Assembly: GCA_937625935.1 (NCBI GenBank)
Contig: OW569393.1
Span: 124,001-188,000 of the forward strand
From: Tetramitus jugosus
Taxonomy: Eukaryota; Protista; Heterolobosea
Reading direction: 5' to 3'
Length of the DNA stretch: 64,000 nt
Within the stretch, counting starts at the first letter, position 1. Every line of letters starts with the position of its first letter. A program made the translations under genes and the position numbers. Under the pieces are notes generated by a model that was not told the DNA's origin, did not search any database, and saw only the letters and a program-made list of their open reading frames with translations. Below, piece by piece: positions 6,497-50,866 of this stretch.

Positions 6497-9400
6497 ATGA
6501 ACCACTACTACATGTGTTACAGAGATCACGATCATTTCAGGCCAGTGAAAAAGGATGTCACATTGAGTAGAGTTGCTGTTTTTGGTAACAAGACCAAACA
6601 AGACAGGTGCTCGATACAACTCAATGAAAGAAACCGTTATTCATTGAGTGGTCATGACGGTCAAGCTCTAAACTTGAAAGTATCAGATAATAAGATTTCT
6701 CAACTGATACGGCAAGAGGTAAAGGAAAAGAAAAAAGACAATTACATTCTGGGCTTGTTCGTACTAAGTTCTGGTGGAGGTGGAGGTGGTGAACATAGTC
6801 GGCCGATTATTCCCAGAGATGTACTTCATTTGATCATGTCTTTCATCCCGGCTTTTCCCTATTATTTCATGTTGAGGTCAGTGTGCCGTCAATGGTTCTA
6901 TGAATTTCAAGACCATATTTTTGCCACGGTTGAGTACTTGAATTTTGTGGATGATGGAAAACCAAAGTATTACTTCAGATCGAACAAGGGTAGTCGCCGA
7001 AAAACACTTGTCCAATTGAAACCTATTGGTTTAATTGGGAGTCGAGGTCGGATGAGTGACGATGATTATTCGACGAATAATTCTGACCAAAAGTATCTGT
7101 TTGAGTTCTTGGCCCAATCGTTGCCCAATGTGAAACATCTTCGATTGGGTTTGGGTTCTCTTGATCATGATCACTTGAATCAATGTGTGAAAACAATGTT
7201 GCCAAAGTTGACGCAACTGGAAACATTGGACATTGTGGATACTGTGAATGATTACCATAGAGCTCCTTATTACGTAATGGAGCGTAGTAATTTGGAGATG
7301 ATTGCTCGTTCATTGCCTAGTTCAGCCAAGAACCTGAACTTTATTGGAGTGACTTTGGCAGATACGTCAGAGTTGGCGCAGCTCAAGATGTTTTCGAGAA
7401 AGGGAAGGCAATCAACTGCAGATTCATTGCAACGTCAGTCACCGGTGGAACAGAATCCACCATCTGTGGATATTCAGAACTTGTCTTTGTCATACATGTT
7501 CTTAAATTATTACTTGAATATCAATGATTGGAAGTGTCTCCATGAAATGTACTCACACTGTGAGATATCAATGGTGAAGTCAATTTCTCACGTTGATTCA
7601 TCCTTAACTTTACCAGTTTTCTCCTATGTTGACTATTTGAATTATATGTCAAAGAAGGAGGGAATTGTATTGTCGTACATGAAAGATGTCCAGAAACATT
7701 GGGCAATAAGCAACACTTCTGGAATCATTGAAACAGTAATTGATATTGCCGTGCAGGAGTATCCTTATTTTCAACCACTTTTATCTCTTCCAGAGGATAA
7801 AACACAGATTCTGCTCGAATCAATGACCAAACTGGATGCACAGTTCATGCTCGGTCCCGAGGATATAACTTTAGTGCCCAAAATGCTGGAGTTGCTCACC
7901 GATCCCCGTCGAATGAAATATCCTGAATTGGTGTTTCAAATTGACAGTACCTTTATTTATGAAGAGGAGCCGAGAACTCTCCTCAGCGGTTTGATCTCAG
8001 AATGTTTTTCTGAGCAAGATTTTAACTTGATCAAGAGAATCATTGAGACTTACAAGCCTTCAATGGCTGTCAATGGTGTCCGAAATTATCTGTTCGAGGC
8101 TTTCTTCGATTCACACTATCCGATTCAAACTGAATTGATGAAATACTTGTTGTGTTTGAAGCCAGATTTAGCCACCTTGGGAGATTTGGAGGGAGACATC
8201 AATGATGAACAAAAGGATCTTCCACTCTTTCAATTGATGCTCTCTCGGAATTACTCTCCAGAATGGTTGGAGGATATCAAATTCTTGGTATCAGCAGGAA
8301 CCTCACTCACTCAAGTGGACAACAATGGAAACAATGTTCTTCACTCAGCCTGTGAGAAGATGGATATTGATTTAGTGAAATACTTCGTTTCAGTTTGCCA
8401 TGAGAGCTTACTGTTCGAAAGAAACAAGCATAGCGAAACTCCACTCGAATTAATTTTCAACCGCCTCACTCGTGAATCCCTTCGTCCCCAGTTTCTTAAC
8501 GAAGTTGTGCAGTTTGCTTGCTTCAAGGACCAGTCACTCAAAGATTACGAGACTTCATGTGGTAGTCTGCTACATGCCTCCTTGAACAGTCCCCATCTTG
8601 AAACAACTCAGTGGTTACTGAACTATGGATTTGATGCGAATGCATTGAACGATAATGGAGAAAACGTGCTTTTCCGTTACATTTCAAGAACGGAATCGTG
8701 TGTGCACCAGAACGTATTTGTAGATGAAATTGGTGTTGAGCTGATCAAAGCAGGAGCACAAATTGATCTTGAAAACAAGGAGGGAGATACCATTGTGACA
8801 TTTGGACTTCAAAAAAACAAATACCGGATGATTCAGTTCCTTGTTCAAACAGCATCAGTTTCGTCGAAACAATGGTCAACTCTCTTGGCTCCGAGAATGA
8901 AACATGGATTGAATGCTTTGCATTATTTGGTCAACAAAATGGTGAAAATATTCGACAGAAGTACCGAGCCAATCAACATAGATGAACCACGGTTTCAACA
9001 GGGTGATTATCCTGTTGCGAAACATTGTGCACTGCTTTGCCTTGAGCATCATCCTGAAATGCTCTATGAACGTTCTGAACCATCAAAAGAAGAAAATATG
9101 AAAGATATCTGTGGTGTGAGTCCTCTCCAAATGTTGCTTGAAGCACATCATACATTGCACCTGTTGAATGAATTGTCAATCAAGTTGAGTGACATTGCCA
9201 ATCAACCAGTGTTTAAAAGCAAGAATACTGGTGATGAGATTGCTCCCATTCCCGTCATGTATTTAGCCTCAGAGGTGGCATTAGATATTCCACTGTTCTA
9301 CGAATTGATGAAACACACTGACAATCTTAAGGTCAGAGACGAATCACGAGAAACAAAACCGAATCTTTTACATATTGCAGCAGAAAGAAGTCCTTCTTTA

Positions 9401-42831: not shown

Positions 42832-42902
42832 CTCGAGCACCGGGAATCGAACCCGGGTCGCCAGAGTGACAGTCTGGAATGCTACCCCTATACCATGCCC
42901 GA
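42832..42902 (-). tRNA. tRNA-Asp(GTC)
   Basis: Cloverleaf: acceptor TCGGGCA/TGCTCGA, anticodon arm CCAGA-CTGTCAC-TCTGG, T-arm CCGGG-TTCGATT-CCCGG; downstream TTTT. Confidence 0.95.
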
Positions 42903-42929: not shown

Positions 42930-44520
42930 CTTTATGGCGGAAAGGCAAAAAACGCAGAAAAAAACGGAATCAAATGTCTGGTGATTCAACAAATTGGTGA
43001 AGGAATACGGCAACAGCCGTTATGCAGTGTGGACCACTGCACGGAAAGGCACGAGGCCAAGTGACAGAGAGGTCGTCATTACTGGCAACGGTAATGGCGT
43101 CTCTCAGTCATCTTTGGCAAGAAAGATTGGAGAGGAGTTGGGTGACTGGCTCAACCGAGTCCAAGTCATCAAAAGGAAAGGCCAGCAACACTTTGTTGCA
43201 TGGGTGACGGTCAAGGGTGACCGCATCTATGACTTTGTTGAGTTGTTCAACAAAGAGAGGAGGATTGGCAACAGCACTGCAGCACCCAAGCGCAGTGTTG
43301 ACTGCACAAGAAAGGTGGTCGTCCATGGCATGAAGAACATGTCAGTGGACGACATCAAGAAGCTACTGGGACCTGAAAAGGTCGCCAGTGTGCTCAAGAA
43401 GCGTGACACTGCTTTCGTGGTCATGGGTGATGAAACCTATGCACAAGCAGTGCTCACCGGAGAGAACAAGGTAAAGGCCACGATCACTCGATACGTCGAG
43501 AGACCACATGATCCTCTCAAGGCCGTCAACAAGAGGTTGACAAAGATGTACGAGGAGGTGCTGACGGTGGTTGACGCACTGCGTCGACAGGTCACAAAGA
43601 CAAAGGGCCAAGAGGGCAACAAACCGGTTCCGATACCGGAACAAGAAGTTGCACAGAGAACTGCTCCTGGTCTGATGGAGACAGAAGAACAAAGGAGTGC
43701 AACACCACTGCCAACAGTGCCTGTTGCACAGCTCAGCGCTGAAAATCAGCAAATCCTGGAGCAAGTGAATGCCACTTCTCCAGTGTTTGCCAGAGCGAAG
43801 AAGGAAATTGCTGCATTGACACTAGCGAGTGCACGCAAAAGGTATGGTTTGGCTGAGGACGAACCAGTCATTGTGGATGTGGACGACGACTCCGAAAAGG
43901 CCATCTGAGTTGTGGATGTGGACTTTGAATCTCCTTTTCGGAGTCGTCGTCCACATGTTGGAGGCTGAATTACAGAAAGAAAAAGAGTGGAATGAATTCC
44001 TTAAGTGTCCATTCGGCCTAGAAAGAAATGAACTGTGGTTTTACCATCAAGTCAGAAGTGGTATGCTCCACACTAAGACTGTACTGCGCGACTTGTATGA
44101 ACCGTTGATAGAGGTCATGCTCACTGCGCAAGCGCGCCAGAGACTATTACCCACTTACTAGTGGAATGTGAGGAAGCCAAAAGGGCAACAAAGGAACTGG
44201 TTGAGGAATTCAAGGCCAAATTGGACAAGCTAGAGTTTACGAGACCAGTCAAGTTAAAGATATGGTTCGATGATGTGGTTTATAATGGAGGGAAATTGGT
44301 ACCACAAAGTCCAAGTCGTTCCACTGAAGAAATCTTAGCAGGGTTAATGGGAAAAGAGGATGACCAGAAGGATGTGTTGATGAGGGAACTGGTTGTGCAC
44401 GGTCGCAAGAAGAGGGAAACAAAAGTTAAAAGGTTGGTGAATGCAATGAAGAGGTCTTGCATCAAACGGTTACACAAAGTCTGGAGAGACTCTGTAGCGA
44501 AGAGATGTGAACAATAGCTC
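42930..44520 (+). mobile_element. Internally deleted non-LTR retrotransposon (ORF1 + ORF2 C-terminal zinc knuckle; EN and RT absent)
   Basis: ORF1 42974/42994-43908 with RRM-like segments and a coiled coil; frameshifted AHCASAPETITHLLVEC (zf-RVT type knuckle) near 44119-44170; boundaries approximate. Confidence 0.65.
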
Positions 44521-44596
44521 AGAACCTGAGGCAAAATTGGTCCTCAGTCGATGATGTTTACAAAATAGATCTCATTGCATTGTCGTGAGATACATT

Positions 44597-45140
44597 GATT
44601 CCAGAAACCATTGAACAAGTACATGTACTCAGTGTACAAATCAGCGTCCTCCTTTGCAGCAAGGAATGGTTTGATCACAGGTGAGTTGGTAAGATACGCT
44701 CGCCTCGTTGATCACTTCAAACAATTTGACTCAATACGAACATTGTTTGCCTCTCGTTTAAGAAGAAGAGGATATGACCACCACTTTGTTCAACGAATGT
44801 TCGCAAAGAACAATTACTTTGCCCTCGTTGAACGATACTACAAACCTATTGACTGGCAAGCTAGAGTGAACAAGTACCAACAAAAATTGGACTTGCAACA
44901 CAAACCAAACATTCCACCAATTTGGAAAGTGTTACACTCTGGCAGTGGCATCAATTATCTGCAATTGATCAACGCCATTTCTCTCTTCAATGATATTGAT
45001 TTGCCAAAGGAATTGGTCATTTGCAACGTCAGAACTTCCCAACATCAGAGAAGTTCTGCACGCATGCAAAACCATATTCAACACTTGAGTGCAACAATGT
45101 GATCCAATGCCAAACGAAGATGAAAAGAAGAAAATGGCTA
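44597..45140 (+). mobile_element. Penelope-like element fragment: RT thumb/C-terminal extension
   Basis: FQKPLNKYMY...SASS...GLITGELVRYARL...F...FASRLRRRGY matches the PLE consensus YxKPxNxxxY...S...GxIxGELxRYxR...F...RLxxRGY; no C-terminal GIY-YIG visible. Confidence 0.75.
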
Positions 45141-45269
45141 GGACATTAATGAACGTTGTTGTTGGTAACCACAAACGTCGTTGGTAGCGTACTTCATCTG
45201 CTGCACAACGACTGATCCGATCATTTTCGGAAAGGGGAAGTGGTTATTCAACAATTCGACGCCAGTTGC

Positions 45270-45991
45270 AGTTGCGACTTCGCAAAATATCACGCGGGTG
45301 CGTGATGCTGACGAAGTCAGCAGCGCCCGCGACCAAACCCACCCAAGACCCAGAACAAGAGATACTTGAGGGAAAAGGAGGCAGTCGAAGCTGCAATGGC
45401 TAAAAGACAAAAAGCAACTCCTTCACAGTCCACAGCATCAAGAAGCGCAAACTTGATAGCATGGACTACAAGTGGTATTGAACCACGAAGACTGTAGTGG
45501 ATAACCGTACGGGGTACGGCTCCAACTGCAATGACAATTCCAACGGCCAATTGAAATCTTCCGAGGTTCAATGCAGGGTAGTTGACCTGCACTTTTAGTA
45601 TAAATAATAAAGTTGTGGTGTAGAGTGCTCATGTTTAGGCACCACGCTAGATTTGCGTCCAGCCCGAATATCTGTGTTGCACGTAAATATATCACAACTA
45701 ACAACAATAACATCTCACTCACTCTCAAGCCCCATAGTGGAGTGTTTGAACCCAAACCCATTTGAGTAGCTGCAAGGCAGCACTCAAGCACAACATTGAT
45801 TGTGCCAAGAAGGTCGTCCTCCACGGTGTCAAAGGTACACTCCATTCTGGTTCACAGAGCCGAACCAGTGTTAGAAATCATGTAGTACAATGTCAACGGA
45901 CTGCCTGGTAAATCCGTCGACATACTCAAGGTGTTGGAGCAAGATTCTCTGTTATCATGAACACGACATCATTTTTCAATTGATGTTTTTT
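45270..45991 (+). ncRNA. Putative large structured RNA (PLE 3' region or independent ncRNA); strand inferred
   Basis: About 17 adjacent hairpins, e.g. ATCACGC/GCGTGAT, TGCTGAC/GTCAGCA, CCGTAC/GTACGG, TGCAGG/CCTGCA, TGGAGTGT/ACACTCCA, CTGGTTC/GAACCAG; ends with an ACATCA/TGATGT hairpin plus T-run. Confidence 0.5.
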
Positions 45992-48367: not shown

Positions 48368-50866
48368 TTATTGAAGATGTTCGATTGCTGAATCGTTGTT
48401 GGCGACAGTACTCCGAGCAGTCAACTGCAATGGTGGGTTATTGAGAGCCTCAAGATCAAACTCGCATAGTAGAGCAACTCTGTCTGACACGAAATAAATA
48501 TTGGGAAAGGTTCGGTCCGAAGGCTCCTCCGATACTCGAGTAATCTTGAGTTCGTTGGGAGAATAGAAAACAAAGTTTGTAGAGTTAAACAGCGTCTTGT
48601 TTGCATCACTCATGGAATATTGAGCTTCGCGAGAGAGGGCCTCCCTATAAGCACTCAACAGCGGAAGTGGATTATCAAAGTATGATGCAAGATTAGACTC
48701 TGAAGACAGATTTGCAATCCGAGGTGCATTGCTGTCTTTCTGAGTCGTATCAGCAGAAACATCGCCCTTGTCCACAATTACACTAATCGATTGATGACGC
48801 ACCGCTTCATCAGGTGAATCATCATCATCCTCGAGAAGGCATTTGTCCTTGTTCTCTTCTTCAATATGACCCGCATCGCGATCCTCATCACCTTCGTCGT
48901 CGACAGCACTACTACCTTCACCATCTCCAGACGAGCTCATGGAAGCTGTATTGTTCAAATCAGCATTCTCGGAATAAGGAGACTCAAACCGAGACAATAA
49001 ATCATACGGCAAATCATGCATATTGCTGTCCAAATCTCCTGCAAACACCACAGCCACGCGTATGTTCTTTTGAGCGTATCCTTCGTCTCTGATAATCGAT
49101 TGTATCTTATTGGTGATCACTTGTGTTTGAAGCAACCGCAGAATAGTTCGTTCCTTTTGAGAGAGTAATTGATCGGCATCTGCGCGACCATACAGGGTAG
49201 CATTGGCCAGCAACAATATAGCAGATGAGTAACTCAGAGTAGGAGACGTCTTTTTAAACTTGTTCAAAATGTCAAACATGTCTCTAAACTCCAATTCGGC
49301 CACCATGGCACAATGTACACTGGATTGACACTGATTCAAAATATTGCTCTTCTCATCCACTGTAATTTGCTTCAGTGAGCACAAACGATCCAACATTGAC
49401 ACCACATCGGCAGTGTCACTCAACCGAACGATCCACTCCTTTGTCTTGTTGAATTTTCCTCTCTTGTACATGATGCAAGACCCGAGCTTCAAATCATCAG
49501 AGTATTCAATCTCAGTGGAAGCATCAGCTTTCTTCTCAGAGACTACACTGTTGCTTCGACTGCTTCCACGCTGTCTTTCTTGCTGTTGCTGCTGTTGTGC
49601 AGTAGCCGCTGCAGCCAACGCTGGCTCATTGAGCTTAAACAATCCAGAGTAACCATTCTTTGACAGTTCAATACTCCACTCATTGTACAACTGCTCGTGC
49701 ACCAACTGCAAACAAAGCAAATCTGCATTGTACGACAATAGCTCTCTCAACAATAGTTTTCTCCGATACACATCAGTAAACACATACGATGGACAATGAG
49801 GAAACACTTGTTCGCACAATTCTCTCTGTCGTCGATCTTTTGTGCCCTTTAGCTCTTGTTTCTTGCGCAACAGATGCAACAACTCTCGACCGATAATCTG
49901 ATAGGAAACCATGGTGAATTTTGATGATACAGAATTGTTATACATCAGTGCGGCAAACGTCGGGATGGACAATGGATGCTGTTGCTGTAGCTGTTTTGGT
50001 GATTTTTCTCCAAATAGAACGTTCCAATCAGGAGCCCGCAACCATTTTCTGGCGGGAGTTCTGGAGGGCAATGGAATCGTGGGTTGCGTTTCGATAAACG
50101 ATGTAATGCTGTGTTGATAACCGATAAATGTCACTGAAAATCGCAATGGATGACCCACGTCCTGCTGACTCGGAGTATAGTGAACACCTTGTGATACGAG
50201 TATACCTTTTTGTTCGCCAACGCCTAATAATACATTGTGACTACTACTACCACTATGATTATTGTTATTGAAATTTGGTTCACTCAAAACTACTGCTGTT
50301 GCTGTTGCTTGTGTATTCGTAGTATTTGATGATGATGAATGGACAATTGCTTGATCAGTGTGATTACTACGATGATTGCTTTGTTGTTGTTGTTGATCTT
50401 CCATTGCTGTTGTTGTTGTTGTCGTTATTGGTGAAGTAGGAGCAGAGGATGATGATGGTGATGAGGGAGGTGGTAAGATTCGAAATGAACGAACGGAACC
50501 TACGGTACGCAACTCTGTTGGAACACCTACATTTGTAATTACATCTTGTTGTTGTTGTTGTTGTTGTTCAAGTGGTGATGATGATTGTTCAGGTACATGT
50601 TCATTACTAGTAGTATGTTGATGTTGATGATTTGAGAGTAAGAGTTGAGAAGTGGAAGGTCTAGAGAGAATGGGTCGTTTGGGTTTGGGCATACGTCTCC
50701 ACTCAAATATACATCCACTCACACGTCGAAGATGAACCACTGGTTTCATCTCAACTCCGACAATCGGAGTTGTATTGGAAAGTTCGATTCGAATCAATGG
50801 ATCATCAAAGTGGTTGTTTTCAATGTCGGAGAGGTCATTACGAAAATAAGAGTGAGCAAGACCCAT
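48368..50866 (-). CDS. CCR4/PDE12-like EEP-fold protein with degenerate catalytic motifs
   Basis: Domain order like CCR4/PDE12 (YTPSQQDVGHPLRF, RRKLLLRELLSYNADLLCLQ, GYSGLF, AGDLDS, PLPLLSAY, SDRVAL); N-terminal MGLAHS. Confidence 0.8.
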   Translation of the reverse strand: MGLAHSYFRNDLSDIENNHFDDPLIRIELSNTTPIVGVEMKPVVHLRRVSGCIFEWRRMPKPKRPILSRPSTSQLLLSNHQHQHTTSNEHVPEQSSSPLEQQQQQQQDVITNVGVPTELRTVGSVRSFRILPPPSSPSSSSAPTSPITTTTTTAMEDQQQQQSNHRSNHTDQAIVHSSSSNTTNTQATATAVVLSEPNFNNNNHSGSSSHNVLLGVGEQKGILVSQGVHYTPSQQDVGHPLRFSVTFIGYQHSITSFIETQPTIPLPSRTPARKWLRAPDWNVLFGEKSPKQLQQQHPLSIPTFAALMYNNSVSSKFTMVSYQIIGRELLHLLRKKQELKGTKDRRQRELCEQVFPHCPSYVFTDVYRRKLLLRELLSYNADLLCLQLVHEQLYNEWSIELSKNGYSGLFKLNEPALAAAATAQQQQQQERQRGSSRSNSVVSEKKADASTEIEYSDDLKLGSCIMYKRGKFNKTKEWIVRLSDTADVVSMLDRLCSLKQITVDEKSNILNQCQSSVHCAMVAELEFRDMFDILNKFKKTSPTLSYSSAILLLANATLYGRADADQLLSQKERTILRLLQTQVITNKIQSIIRDEGYAQKNIRVAVVFAGDLDSNMHDLPYDLLSRFESPYSENADLNNTASMSSSGDGEGSSAVDDEGDEDRDAGHIEEENKDKCLLEDDDDSPDEAVRHQSISVIVDKGDVSADTTQKDSNAPRIANLSSESNLASYFDNPLPLLSAYREALSREAQYSMSDANKTLFNSTNFVFYSPNELKITRVSEEPSDRTFPNIYFVSDRVALLCEFDLEALNNPPLQLTARSTVANNDSAIEHLQ

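Follow-up and report, generated by a model that had tools for sequence, protein, structure and literature searches.

A hairpin-rich stretch inside a Tetramitus jugosus chromosome is probably the relic tail of a telomere-attaching, endonuclease-less Penelope-like element

The stretch considered here, positions 45270–45991 (722 nt) of a 64,000-nt segment of the Tetramitus jugosus genome (the window), raises the question of whether a closely packed run of hairpins behind the remains of a reverse transcriptase (RT) is the tail of a transposon or a relative of telomerase RNA. A sequence-only reading had treated it as a single RNA of ~720 nt downstream of a Penelope-like element (PLE), and offered two alternatives: a telomere-priming 3′ module of a PLE without an endonuclease, or a telomerase-RNA-like gene. 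The first of these stands for 45270–45760, while the second does not. With a probability of roughly 0.85, the stretch is the decayed tail of a telomere-attaching, endonuclease-less PLE, stranded inside a chromosome beside unrelated transposon debris.

Copies were found by blastn and tblastn of the window sequence against the organism's own genome contigs (C3, C9, C10 and others), and since different pieces of the stretch match different repeats, it is not one unit. Three repeat families that are unrelated to one another are pieced together in the region: the PLE tail runs to 45760 and is followed, from 45761 to 45991, by debris of the first and second open reading frames (ORF1 and ORF2) of long interspersed nuclear elements (LINEs), so that the notion of a single ~720-nt RNA has to be given up. 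The PLE part of the stretch (45270–45760, ~490 nt) consists of the last ~210 nt of the RT reading frame and a 3′ untranslated region (UTR) of ~280 nt. Units lying a few kilobases from contig ends on C3, C9 (both ends), C10, C17 and C48 match 44601–45760, and the window copy as a whole (44564–45760) is 5′-truncated, frameshifted and internally deleted. It starts within ...RSHCIVVRYID at 44564, resumes after the internal deletion at QKPLNKYMY (~44599), and continues through the RT thumb and the C-terminal tail, with several frameshifts, up to the ORF2 stop codon (TGA, 45479–45481). The upstream ORFs had been described as decayed and the RT catalytic core as missing, and both descriptions are accurate: the ORFs are broken by frameshifts, and of the core only ...RSHCIVVRYID (44564–44598) is kept. 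This copy is a dead interstitial relic. Pfam found nothing significant in the window ORFs; a Phage_integrase match (E 0.05) was dismissed, as it falls in the RT thumb.

The sole full-length copy is found at the right end of C10 (C10:604640–609686, ~5.04 kb). It has an ORF1 of 322 aa with a basic tail, an overlapping ORF2 of 1273 aa, and a 3′ UTR of ~350 nt that ends in ...GTGGAGTGTTTGA followed by ACCCAA repeats, i.e., GTTTGA(ACCCAA)n. The motifs GLKF, TDKNLG (a DKN variant of DKG), FYLLPKVHK, RPIVAS and YIDD are present in ORF2, and GxKF/Y and DKG are the motifs considered diagnostic of PLEs (PMC8557442). Its distant homologs, at 21–27% identity and E-values of 3e-15 to 1e-5, are proteins with RVT_1 and GIY-YIG domains, that is, canonical PLEs. 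In the 1273-aa protein itself no GIY-YIG domain was detected, a weak match to RVT_1 being all that a Pfam scan at E ≤ 0.1 returned; the protein ends ~150 aa beyond the thumb, and the coding sequence of its tail overlaps RNA hairpins. By its motifs, homologs and domain content, the predicted ORF2 product is a PLE reverse transcriptase without an endonuclease domain, as had been supposed for the RT remains upstream of the stretch. A separate, bona fide telomerase reverse transcriptase (TERT) gene is present elsewhere (C31:284128–284511, Telomerase_RBD 137.6 bits, in a 1074-aa open frame), so this organism has telomerase beside a telomere-attaching retroelement.

Relatives of the element occur in other data sets. 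A second species, here called L046 (NCBI GCA_037189345.1, contig JBBCKJ010018015.1), has an RT that is 46% identical in protein; CCAAACCCAAACCCAACCCAAC lies upstream of its ORF, and two structures described below, H1 and SL-A, have homologous folds in it. More distant are L047 and L048 (36% protein identity), from two separate runs (SRR22870111 and SRR22870109, respectively), which have an ORF1 with a basic tail and show ...GCAAACCCAA at a contig break. A metagenome scan for close relatives gave PLEs at ≤34% identity (best aligned segment), which were of no use for comparing the 3′ UTR.

All contig ends inspected carry (CCCAAA)n/(TTTGGG)n tracts of 0.5–0.8 kb, and a 24-mer of four telomere repeats has ~12,400 matches genome-wide; these two observations establish TTTGGG as the telomere repeat, the unit that the sequence-only reading had presumed. 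All ten subtelomeric copies that keep their 3′ end (two each on C3, on C10 and at the left end of C9, and one each on C17, C48, C22 and the right end of C9) lie within ~10 kb of a contig end with the sense strand pointing inward, bracketed by CCCAAA telomere tracts. This is the orientation expected for priming on a G-rich overhang. The search for a full-length, RT-bearing copy led to the right end of C10, and the family sits at chromosome ends. Telomere-capped 5′ truncations are found at no fewer than six positions, at least C3:1270, C17:1792, C48:380178, C9:3273, C3:665 (equal to C10:610268) and one on C22. Copies form head-to-tail chains on C3, C9 and C10, with more such joints in the organism's DNA runs, and read depth falls along the element from 3′ to 5′ (826 vs 39 in DNA run X3). 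A 173-aa ORF at the left end of C9 (L032:4670–5191) was also seen; it begins ~20 nt beyond the telomeric tract of the C9 PLE copy.

The window copy (C50:168.6–169.8 kb) is some 169 kb inside a telomere-to-telomere contig of 329 kb, where it has no upstream telomere tract and is surrounded only by LINE debris. The simplest account of its origin would be priming on a free DNA end at a chromosome break. It could also be that the element is what we take it to be but that this copy is subtelomeric DNA moved inward by ectopic recombination, segmental copying or an old chromosome fusion. Exchange between ends at the DNA level is evident from the subtelomeres of different chromosomes, which are 99–100% identical, and the internal deletion, the patchwork of other repeat fragments around the copy and the failure to find a target-site duplication or empty site would all agree with such a transfer. 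An intact 3′ end combined with a truncated 5′ end is, however, the usual signature of reverse transcription, and the copy is accompanied by just two telomere repeats; the subtelomeric sequence found beyond the element at chromosome ends is missing. C7 holds another interstitial copy, and this too is a short, 3′-anchored fragment. Inward transfer of DNA is, on balance, rather unlikely. The copy has also suffered two losses: the 86-nt hairpin, cleanly removed here, is kept in all other subfamilies and, with a different sequence, in L046, and a hairpin-bearing segment of ~42 nt (~45538) is kept by all other lineages. Both losses resemble excision across the bases of hairpins.

Stability was expressed as the z-score of the fold relative to dinucleotide shuffles, with 40 random 250-nt windows from the same 64 kb as controls (mean −0.09, sd 0.89, lowest −2.7). 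The stretch as a whole is clearly more stable than its shuffles on both strands (z −5.0 on the plus strand and −5.45 on the minus strand), and each of the stems that had been listed for it was found, at the same coordinates or 1–2 nt away, as was the T-run after 45986. Values for its three parts are given in Table 1.

The best supported structure of the tail is SL-A, a stem-loop of four helices. A covariance model built from the main subfamily also matched the divergent subfamily (C9:2092 and C22) and L046, and in the resulting alignment of nine distinct sequences 96% of cells are paired and 15 of the 30 pairs have changed on both sides. None of 500 shuffles reached these values, slid controls were 19–58% paired, and RNAalifold gives the same four helices. 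Compensatory changes, which had been named as a check, are therefore present in SL-A across two subfamilies and a second species. Its invariant G-U pairs would become C-A mismatches in the complementary strand, which favours the sense strand. From this covariation we regard SL-A as a functional, conserved RNA structure. One could argue instead that the hairpins have no RNA function and are DNA-level palindromes, with excess stability as a by-product: both strands are similarly stable over the whole region and over the ORF2 tail, unusual stability is seen in the unrelated LINE part too, on its minus strand, and the hairpin at the very end of the element is weak. Against this stand the preservation of the four SL-A helices through those paired changes, the greater stability of SL-A on the sense strand together with its invariant G-U pairs, and the persistence of a second structure, H1, in L046 despite changed amino acids in its 3′ arm. 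An explanation by palindromes alone is accordingly quite improbable.

H1 is a two-tier hairpin within the ORF2 tail, with z-scores of −4.8 in the window, −6.9 in the full-length copy and −6.9 at the homologous site of L046, where pairing is kept although the 3′ arm encodes different amino acids; the MAFFT alignment of H1 with L046 is not structure-aware, and so no pair counts were drawn from it. Directly 3′ of H1 is a telomere-like seed. In a C3 and a C10 copy the telomere tract is joined exactly at this seed, the divergent C9 copy also starts there, and DNA run X3 contains a loose end, TTTGGG..., at the same site. Two smaller hairpins of the 3′ UTR (45505–45519 and 45572–45591) keep their loops while their stems differ in L046 and in subfamily b. 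Next to the second of them is a single-stranded A/U-rich linker, conserved across subfamilies and in the second species (L037:2686–2710 on the minus strand; L046:2905–2930). The full-length C10 copy is preceded by a 580-nt 3′ fragment, and for that reason the linker could act as a pseudo-LTR-type promoter (LTR, long terminal repeat) for a downstream copy; it could also be a polyadenylation signal.

At the extreme 3′ end of the element is a short tract complementary to the telomere repeat. Copies that keep the end all finish in GTTTGA-ACCCAAACC(C), and the tract, AACCCAAACC(C), forms the terminus of every one of them, so its predicted conservation in other copies holds. It is unpaired in all folds. 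Only 9–11 nt separate the element from non-telomeric DNA in three places, namely in the window copy, on C7 and at the head-to-tail junction on C10 where the full-length copy begins; because the tract is kept even at such junctions, it is part of the element and not of the target. Within the window, AACCCAAACCCA occurs at 45749–45760 and at 7146 on the minus strand, with 0.01 occurrences expected by chance. Similar 12-mers had been noted near 7146 and near 50678; the former is an exact AACCCAAACCCA, while the latter is TTTGGGTTTGGG, which was found by regular expression and is not an exact match.

The same region had been thought to be enclosed by a boundary helix between TGGAGTGT (45738–45745) and ACACTCCA (45837–45844). 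The two are indeed complementary in the window copy, but ACACTCCA is absent downstream of the nine other copies examined, which makes the helix a chance match, and we reject it as a boundary around a template core: it pairs PLE sequence with LINE sequence, and does so in this copy only. The real local partner of TGGAGTGT is the CACUCU arm (45720–45725) of a terminal hairpin. This hairpin is tentative, since its z-score is only about −1.6, no covariation supports it and subfamily b does not form it. That the stretch is a telomerase-RNA-like gene, with a C-rich core (45749–45760) bounded by this helix and copied repeatedly by an RT, has next to no chance of being correct: the tract amounts to exactly two telomere repeats, left unpaired in every fold, PLE RTs are the sister group of TERT (PMC8557442) and the region is more stable than shuffles, but the enclosing helix exists in one copy with its 3′ strand inside an unrelated LINE fragment, the sequence is a multi-copy transposon tail continuous with an RT ORF rather than a single-copy gene, the tract closes the unit at its 3′ terminus, as a primer-binding site and not an internal template, no telomerase-RNA or other credible Rfam family matches the window region or the full-length element at E up to 10, and a separate TERT is encoded in the genome.

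Table 1. Features of the relic PLE tail and of the adjoining LINE fragments (positions in the window; z-scores relative to dinucleotide shuffles).
Feature	Position	Strand	Basis or remarks	z, plus strand	z, minus strand
ORF2 remnant of the endonuclease-less PLE	44564–45481	+	blastn/tblastn to subtelomeric copies, alignment of the 5′ junction, ORF pieces		
ORF2 tail within the stretch	45270–45481			−4.9	−3.9
H1, two-tier hairpin in ORF2 tail	45293–45331	+	outer helix 9 bp (45293–45301/45323–45331), inner helix 7 bp (45306–45312/45316–45322)		
Telomere-like seed CCAAACCCACCCAA	45333–45346	+	directly 3′ of H1; intact and internal in the window copy; recurs after H1 in L046		
Clean loss of 86-nt hairpin	45434–45435	+	alignment of copies; L046 sequence		
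3′ UTR of the element	45482–45760	+	homology to the 3′ UTRs of all copies	−1.95	−0.57
Hairpin CCGUAC-GGG-GUACGG	45505–45519	+	GGG loop kept, stem different, in subfamily b and L046		
Hairpin UGCAGG...CCUGCA	45572–45591	+	AGUUGA(C) loop conserved; stem in L046 is GUGUAC/GUACAC		
Single-stranded A/U-rich linker TATAAATAATAAA	45593–45610	+	holds TATAAA and AATAAA; invariant columns; equivalent tract in L046		
SL-A, 90-nt four-helix stem-loop	45611–45699	+	see text	−4.3	−1.8
Weak terminal hairpin CACUCU/GGAGUG	45720–45744	+	local partner of TGGAGTGT; z −1.5 to −1.7		
Terminal reverse-complement telomeric tract AACCCAAACCCA	45749–45760	+	3′ end of all copies, length 6–41 nt		
LINE part of the stretch	45761–45991			−2.1	−4.4
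LINE ORF1-like fragment (family 'B')	45763–45839	+	at least 38 copies at 93–97% identity; unrelated to PLE		
ACACTCCA, chance complement of 45738–45745	45837–45844	+	end of LINE fragment plus filler; absent in 9 of 9 other copies		
LINE ORF2 start fragment	45860–45944	+	94% identity to C37:211025 and C4:481274; includes the 45890–45923 hairpin		

The observations that a mechanism has to explain are the anatomy of the element, its terminal position, uniform orientation and flanking telomere tracts, the capped truncation points, the conserved terminal tract and the covariation of SL-A. We infer that the unpaired 3′ tip of the transcript (ACCCAAACCC) would pair with the TTTGGG overhang at a chromosome end, that the RT of the element probably recognises the structured tail, i.e., SL-A and the neighbouring hairpins, and that it would then extend the chromosomal 3′-OH, which would make cutting of DNA unnecessary. 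Reverse transcription would often halt early, and telomerase would re-cap the new end of the truncated cDNA with TTTGGG repeats, to which the next element could attach. The combination of H1 and the seed behind it may promote stalling at a point from which telomerase can extend the cDNA, and two independent copies start exactly there. It is possible, with the odds against it, that this amoeba lineage of PLEs has replaced the hammerhead ribozyme typical of its relatives by SL-A and an exposed CCCAAA tip for recognition by the RT, and that it has added a 'stop-and-cap' device (H1 and the seed) and a pseudo-LTR promoter in the TATAAA linker. If so, it would be a compact system of an RT plus a structured RNA that cooperates with telomerase.

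Several points weigh against the identification of the stretch as a telomere-attaching PLE tail, or against parts of this mechanism. Two divergent subtelomeric fragments at right ends (C29:476150–477051 and C21:501595–502559) have the opposite orientation, with the sense strand outward. The window copy and the 165-nt copy on C7 are both interstitial and without a telomere cap, and neither an empty site nor a target duplication could be reconstructed for the window copy, the sequence before it (43957–44563) having no match among the LINE loci retrieved. Taken as a whole, the 3′ UTR shows only a modest excess of stability (Table 1), and the covariation in SL-A draws on only some four independent lineages, whose alignment was fitted to the model. 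Rfam scans of the window region, of the full-length element and of its last 720 nt gave no hammerhead match at E ≤ 5–10, thresholds that a very divergent ribozyme could escape. Lastly, the transcript, with its strand and 3′ end, is a prediction from the DNA sequence. In two soil runs labelled metatranscriptomic (X1 and X2), eight ORF2 pieces of ~151 nt were found (L037:2934–4701), seven of them with at most 1–2 differing bases each; these may reflect transcription of the element in soil or may be DNA of the organism there. Apart from these points, a regular expression for the hammerhead core (CUGANGA...GAAA) had its sole match in H1, and this candidate was rejected, being without helix II and not conserved in L046.

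The surroundings of the relic deserve brief mention. Intact copies of the LINE ORF2 start read MWYNVNGL...LLLQET, the N-terminus of an AP-endonuclease-type domain. Directly after the start codon of this ORF lies an 11-bp hairpin (45890–45923, with L019:1531–1564; AUGUCAACGGA...UCCGUCGACAU) that is identical in two other copies, and the LINE part that bears it has an unusually stable minus strand. Upstream of the PLE copy, a tRNA-Asp gene (42832–42902, minus strand) is 45 bp from a LINE-type unit of ~1 kb that carries an ORF1 (42947–43956). At least 40 copies of this unit exist at 89–96% identity, and it ends in a hairpin of ~80 nt (43877–43956) with weak Rfam matches to miRNA precursors. Its position beside the tRNA gene may reflect insertion targeted to tRNA genes.

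Telomere-associated, endonuclease-deficient PLEs were reportedly described by Gladyshev and Arkhipova in 2007 (PNAS), as Athena of bdelloid rotifers and Coprina of fungi, plants and protists. The kind of element is thus one known since that year, and the difference lies in a 3′ fold without a detectable ribozyme. Athena, Coprina and the Terminons attach to G-rich overhangs via reverse-complement telomeric repeats at their 3′ ends, and a hammerhead next to the repeats is the characteristic fold of endonuclease-less PLEs (PMC6431247, PMC8557442). With Athena and Coprina the present element shares a PLE RT without GIY-YIG, an upstream ORF1, a location at chromosome ends in which the 3′ end points to the centromere, 3′ reverse-complement telomeric repeats, 5′ truncations with short telomere caps, and head-to-tail chains. 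Its repeat, however, is CCCAAA and not ACACCC or TCACCC, and in place of a detectable hammerhead by the repeats there are the conserved 90-nt stem-loop, an A/C-rich linker and the weak terminal hairpin. The likeness to telomerase RNA is that of a structured RNA with a short, C-rich, telomere-complementary tract and a partner RT related to TERT. In contrast to telomerase RNA, an mRNA-like transposon transcript would here carry the tract at its 3′ terminus and use it a single time for priming, the sequence is multi-copy, the proposed boundary helix is not conserved, and no Rfam telomerase-RNA model matches. In Drosophila, which has no telomerase, the telomeric retrotransposons HeT-A, TART and TAHRE are LINEs that have poly(A) tails and lack a tip complementary to telomeres. 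They too join chromosome ends with their 3′ end toward the centromere and build head-to-tail arrays whose members are truncated to different extents at the 5′ end, but the T. jugosus element is a PLE with a telomere-complementary tip, and here telomerase repeats alternate with elements. LINE-1 can also insert independently of its endonuclease at breaks or dysfunctional telomeres (PMC5537684). Both the HeT-A group and such LINE-1 insertions use free DNA 3′ ends without a self-made nick, which could also explain the interstitial window copy.

Among the papers searched, none combined Penelope-like elements, Naegleria and telomeres. What is new in this study is, first, the assignment of the stretch to a relic copy and LINE debris, with rejection of the boundary helix, and second, a covariation-backed, non-hammerhead 3′ stem-loop common to a second species, together with relatives from two further data sets in which the CCCAAA end is also seen. 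As regards the window, the outcome is sobering, as the apparent template core with its boundary helix is an accident of two adjoining transposons and the copy is dead. The family is of wider interest because telomerase reverse transcriptase has no closer living relatives than the endonuclease-less PLEs, and how these recognise their own RNA and dock at chromosome ends is known from sequence inference in rotifers and fungi alone. The telomere-to-telomere genome of this protist offers one intact element, many dated, telomere-capped truncations, a fold other than the hammerhead that is backed by covariation, and relatives in two data sets, and so provides a tractable system for studying the recognition of RNA by an RT and its interplay with telomerase.

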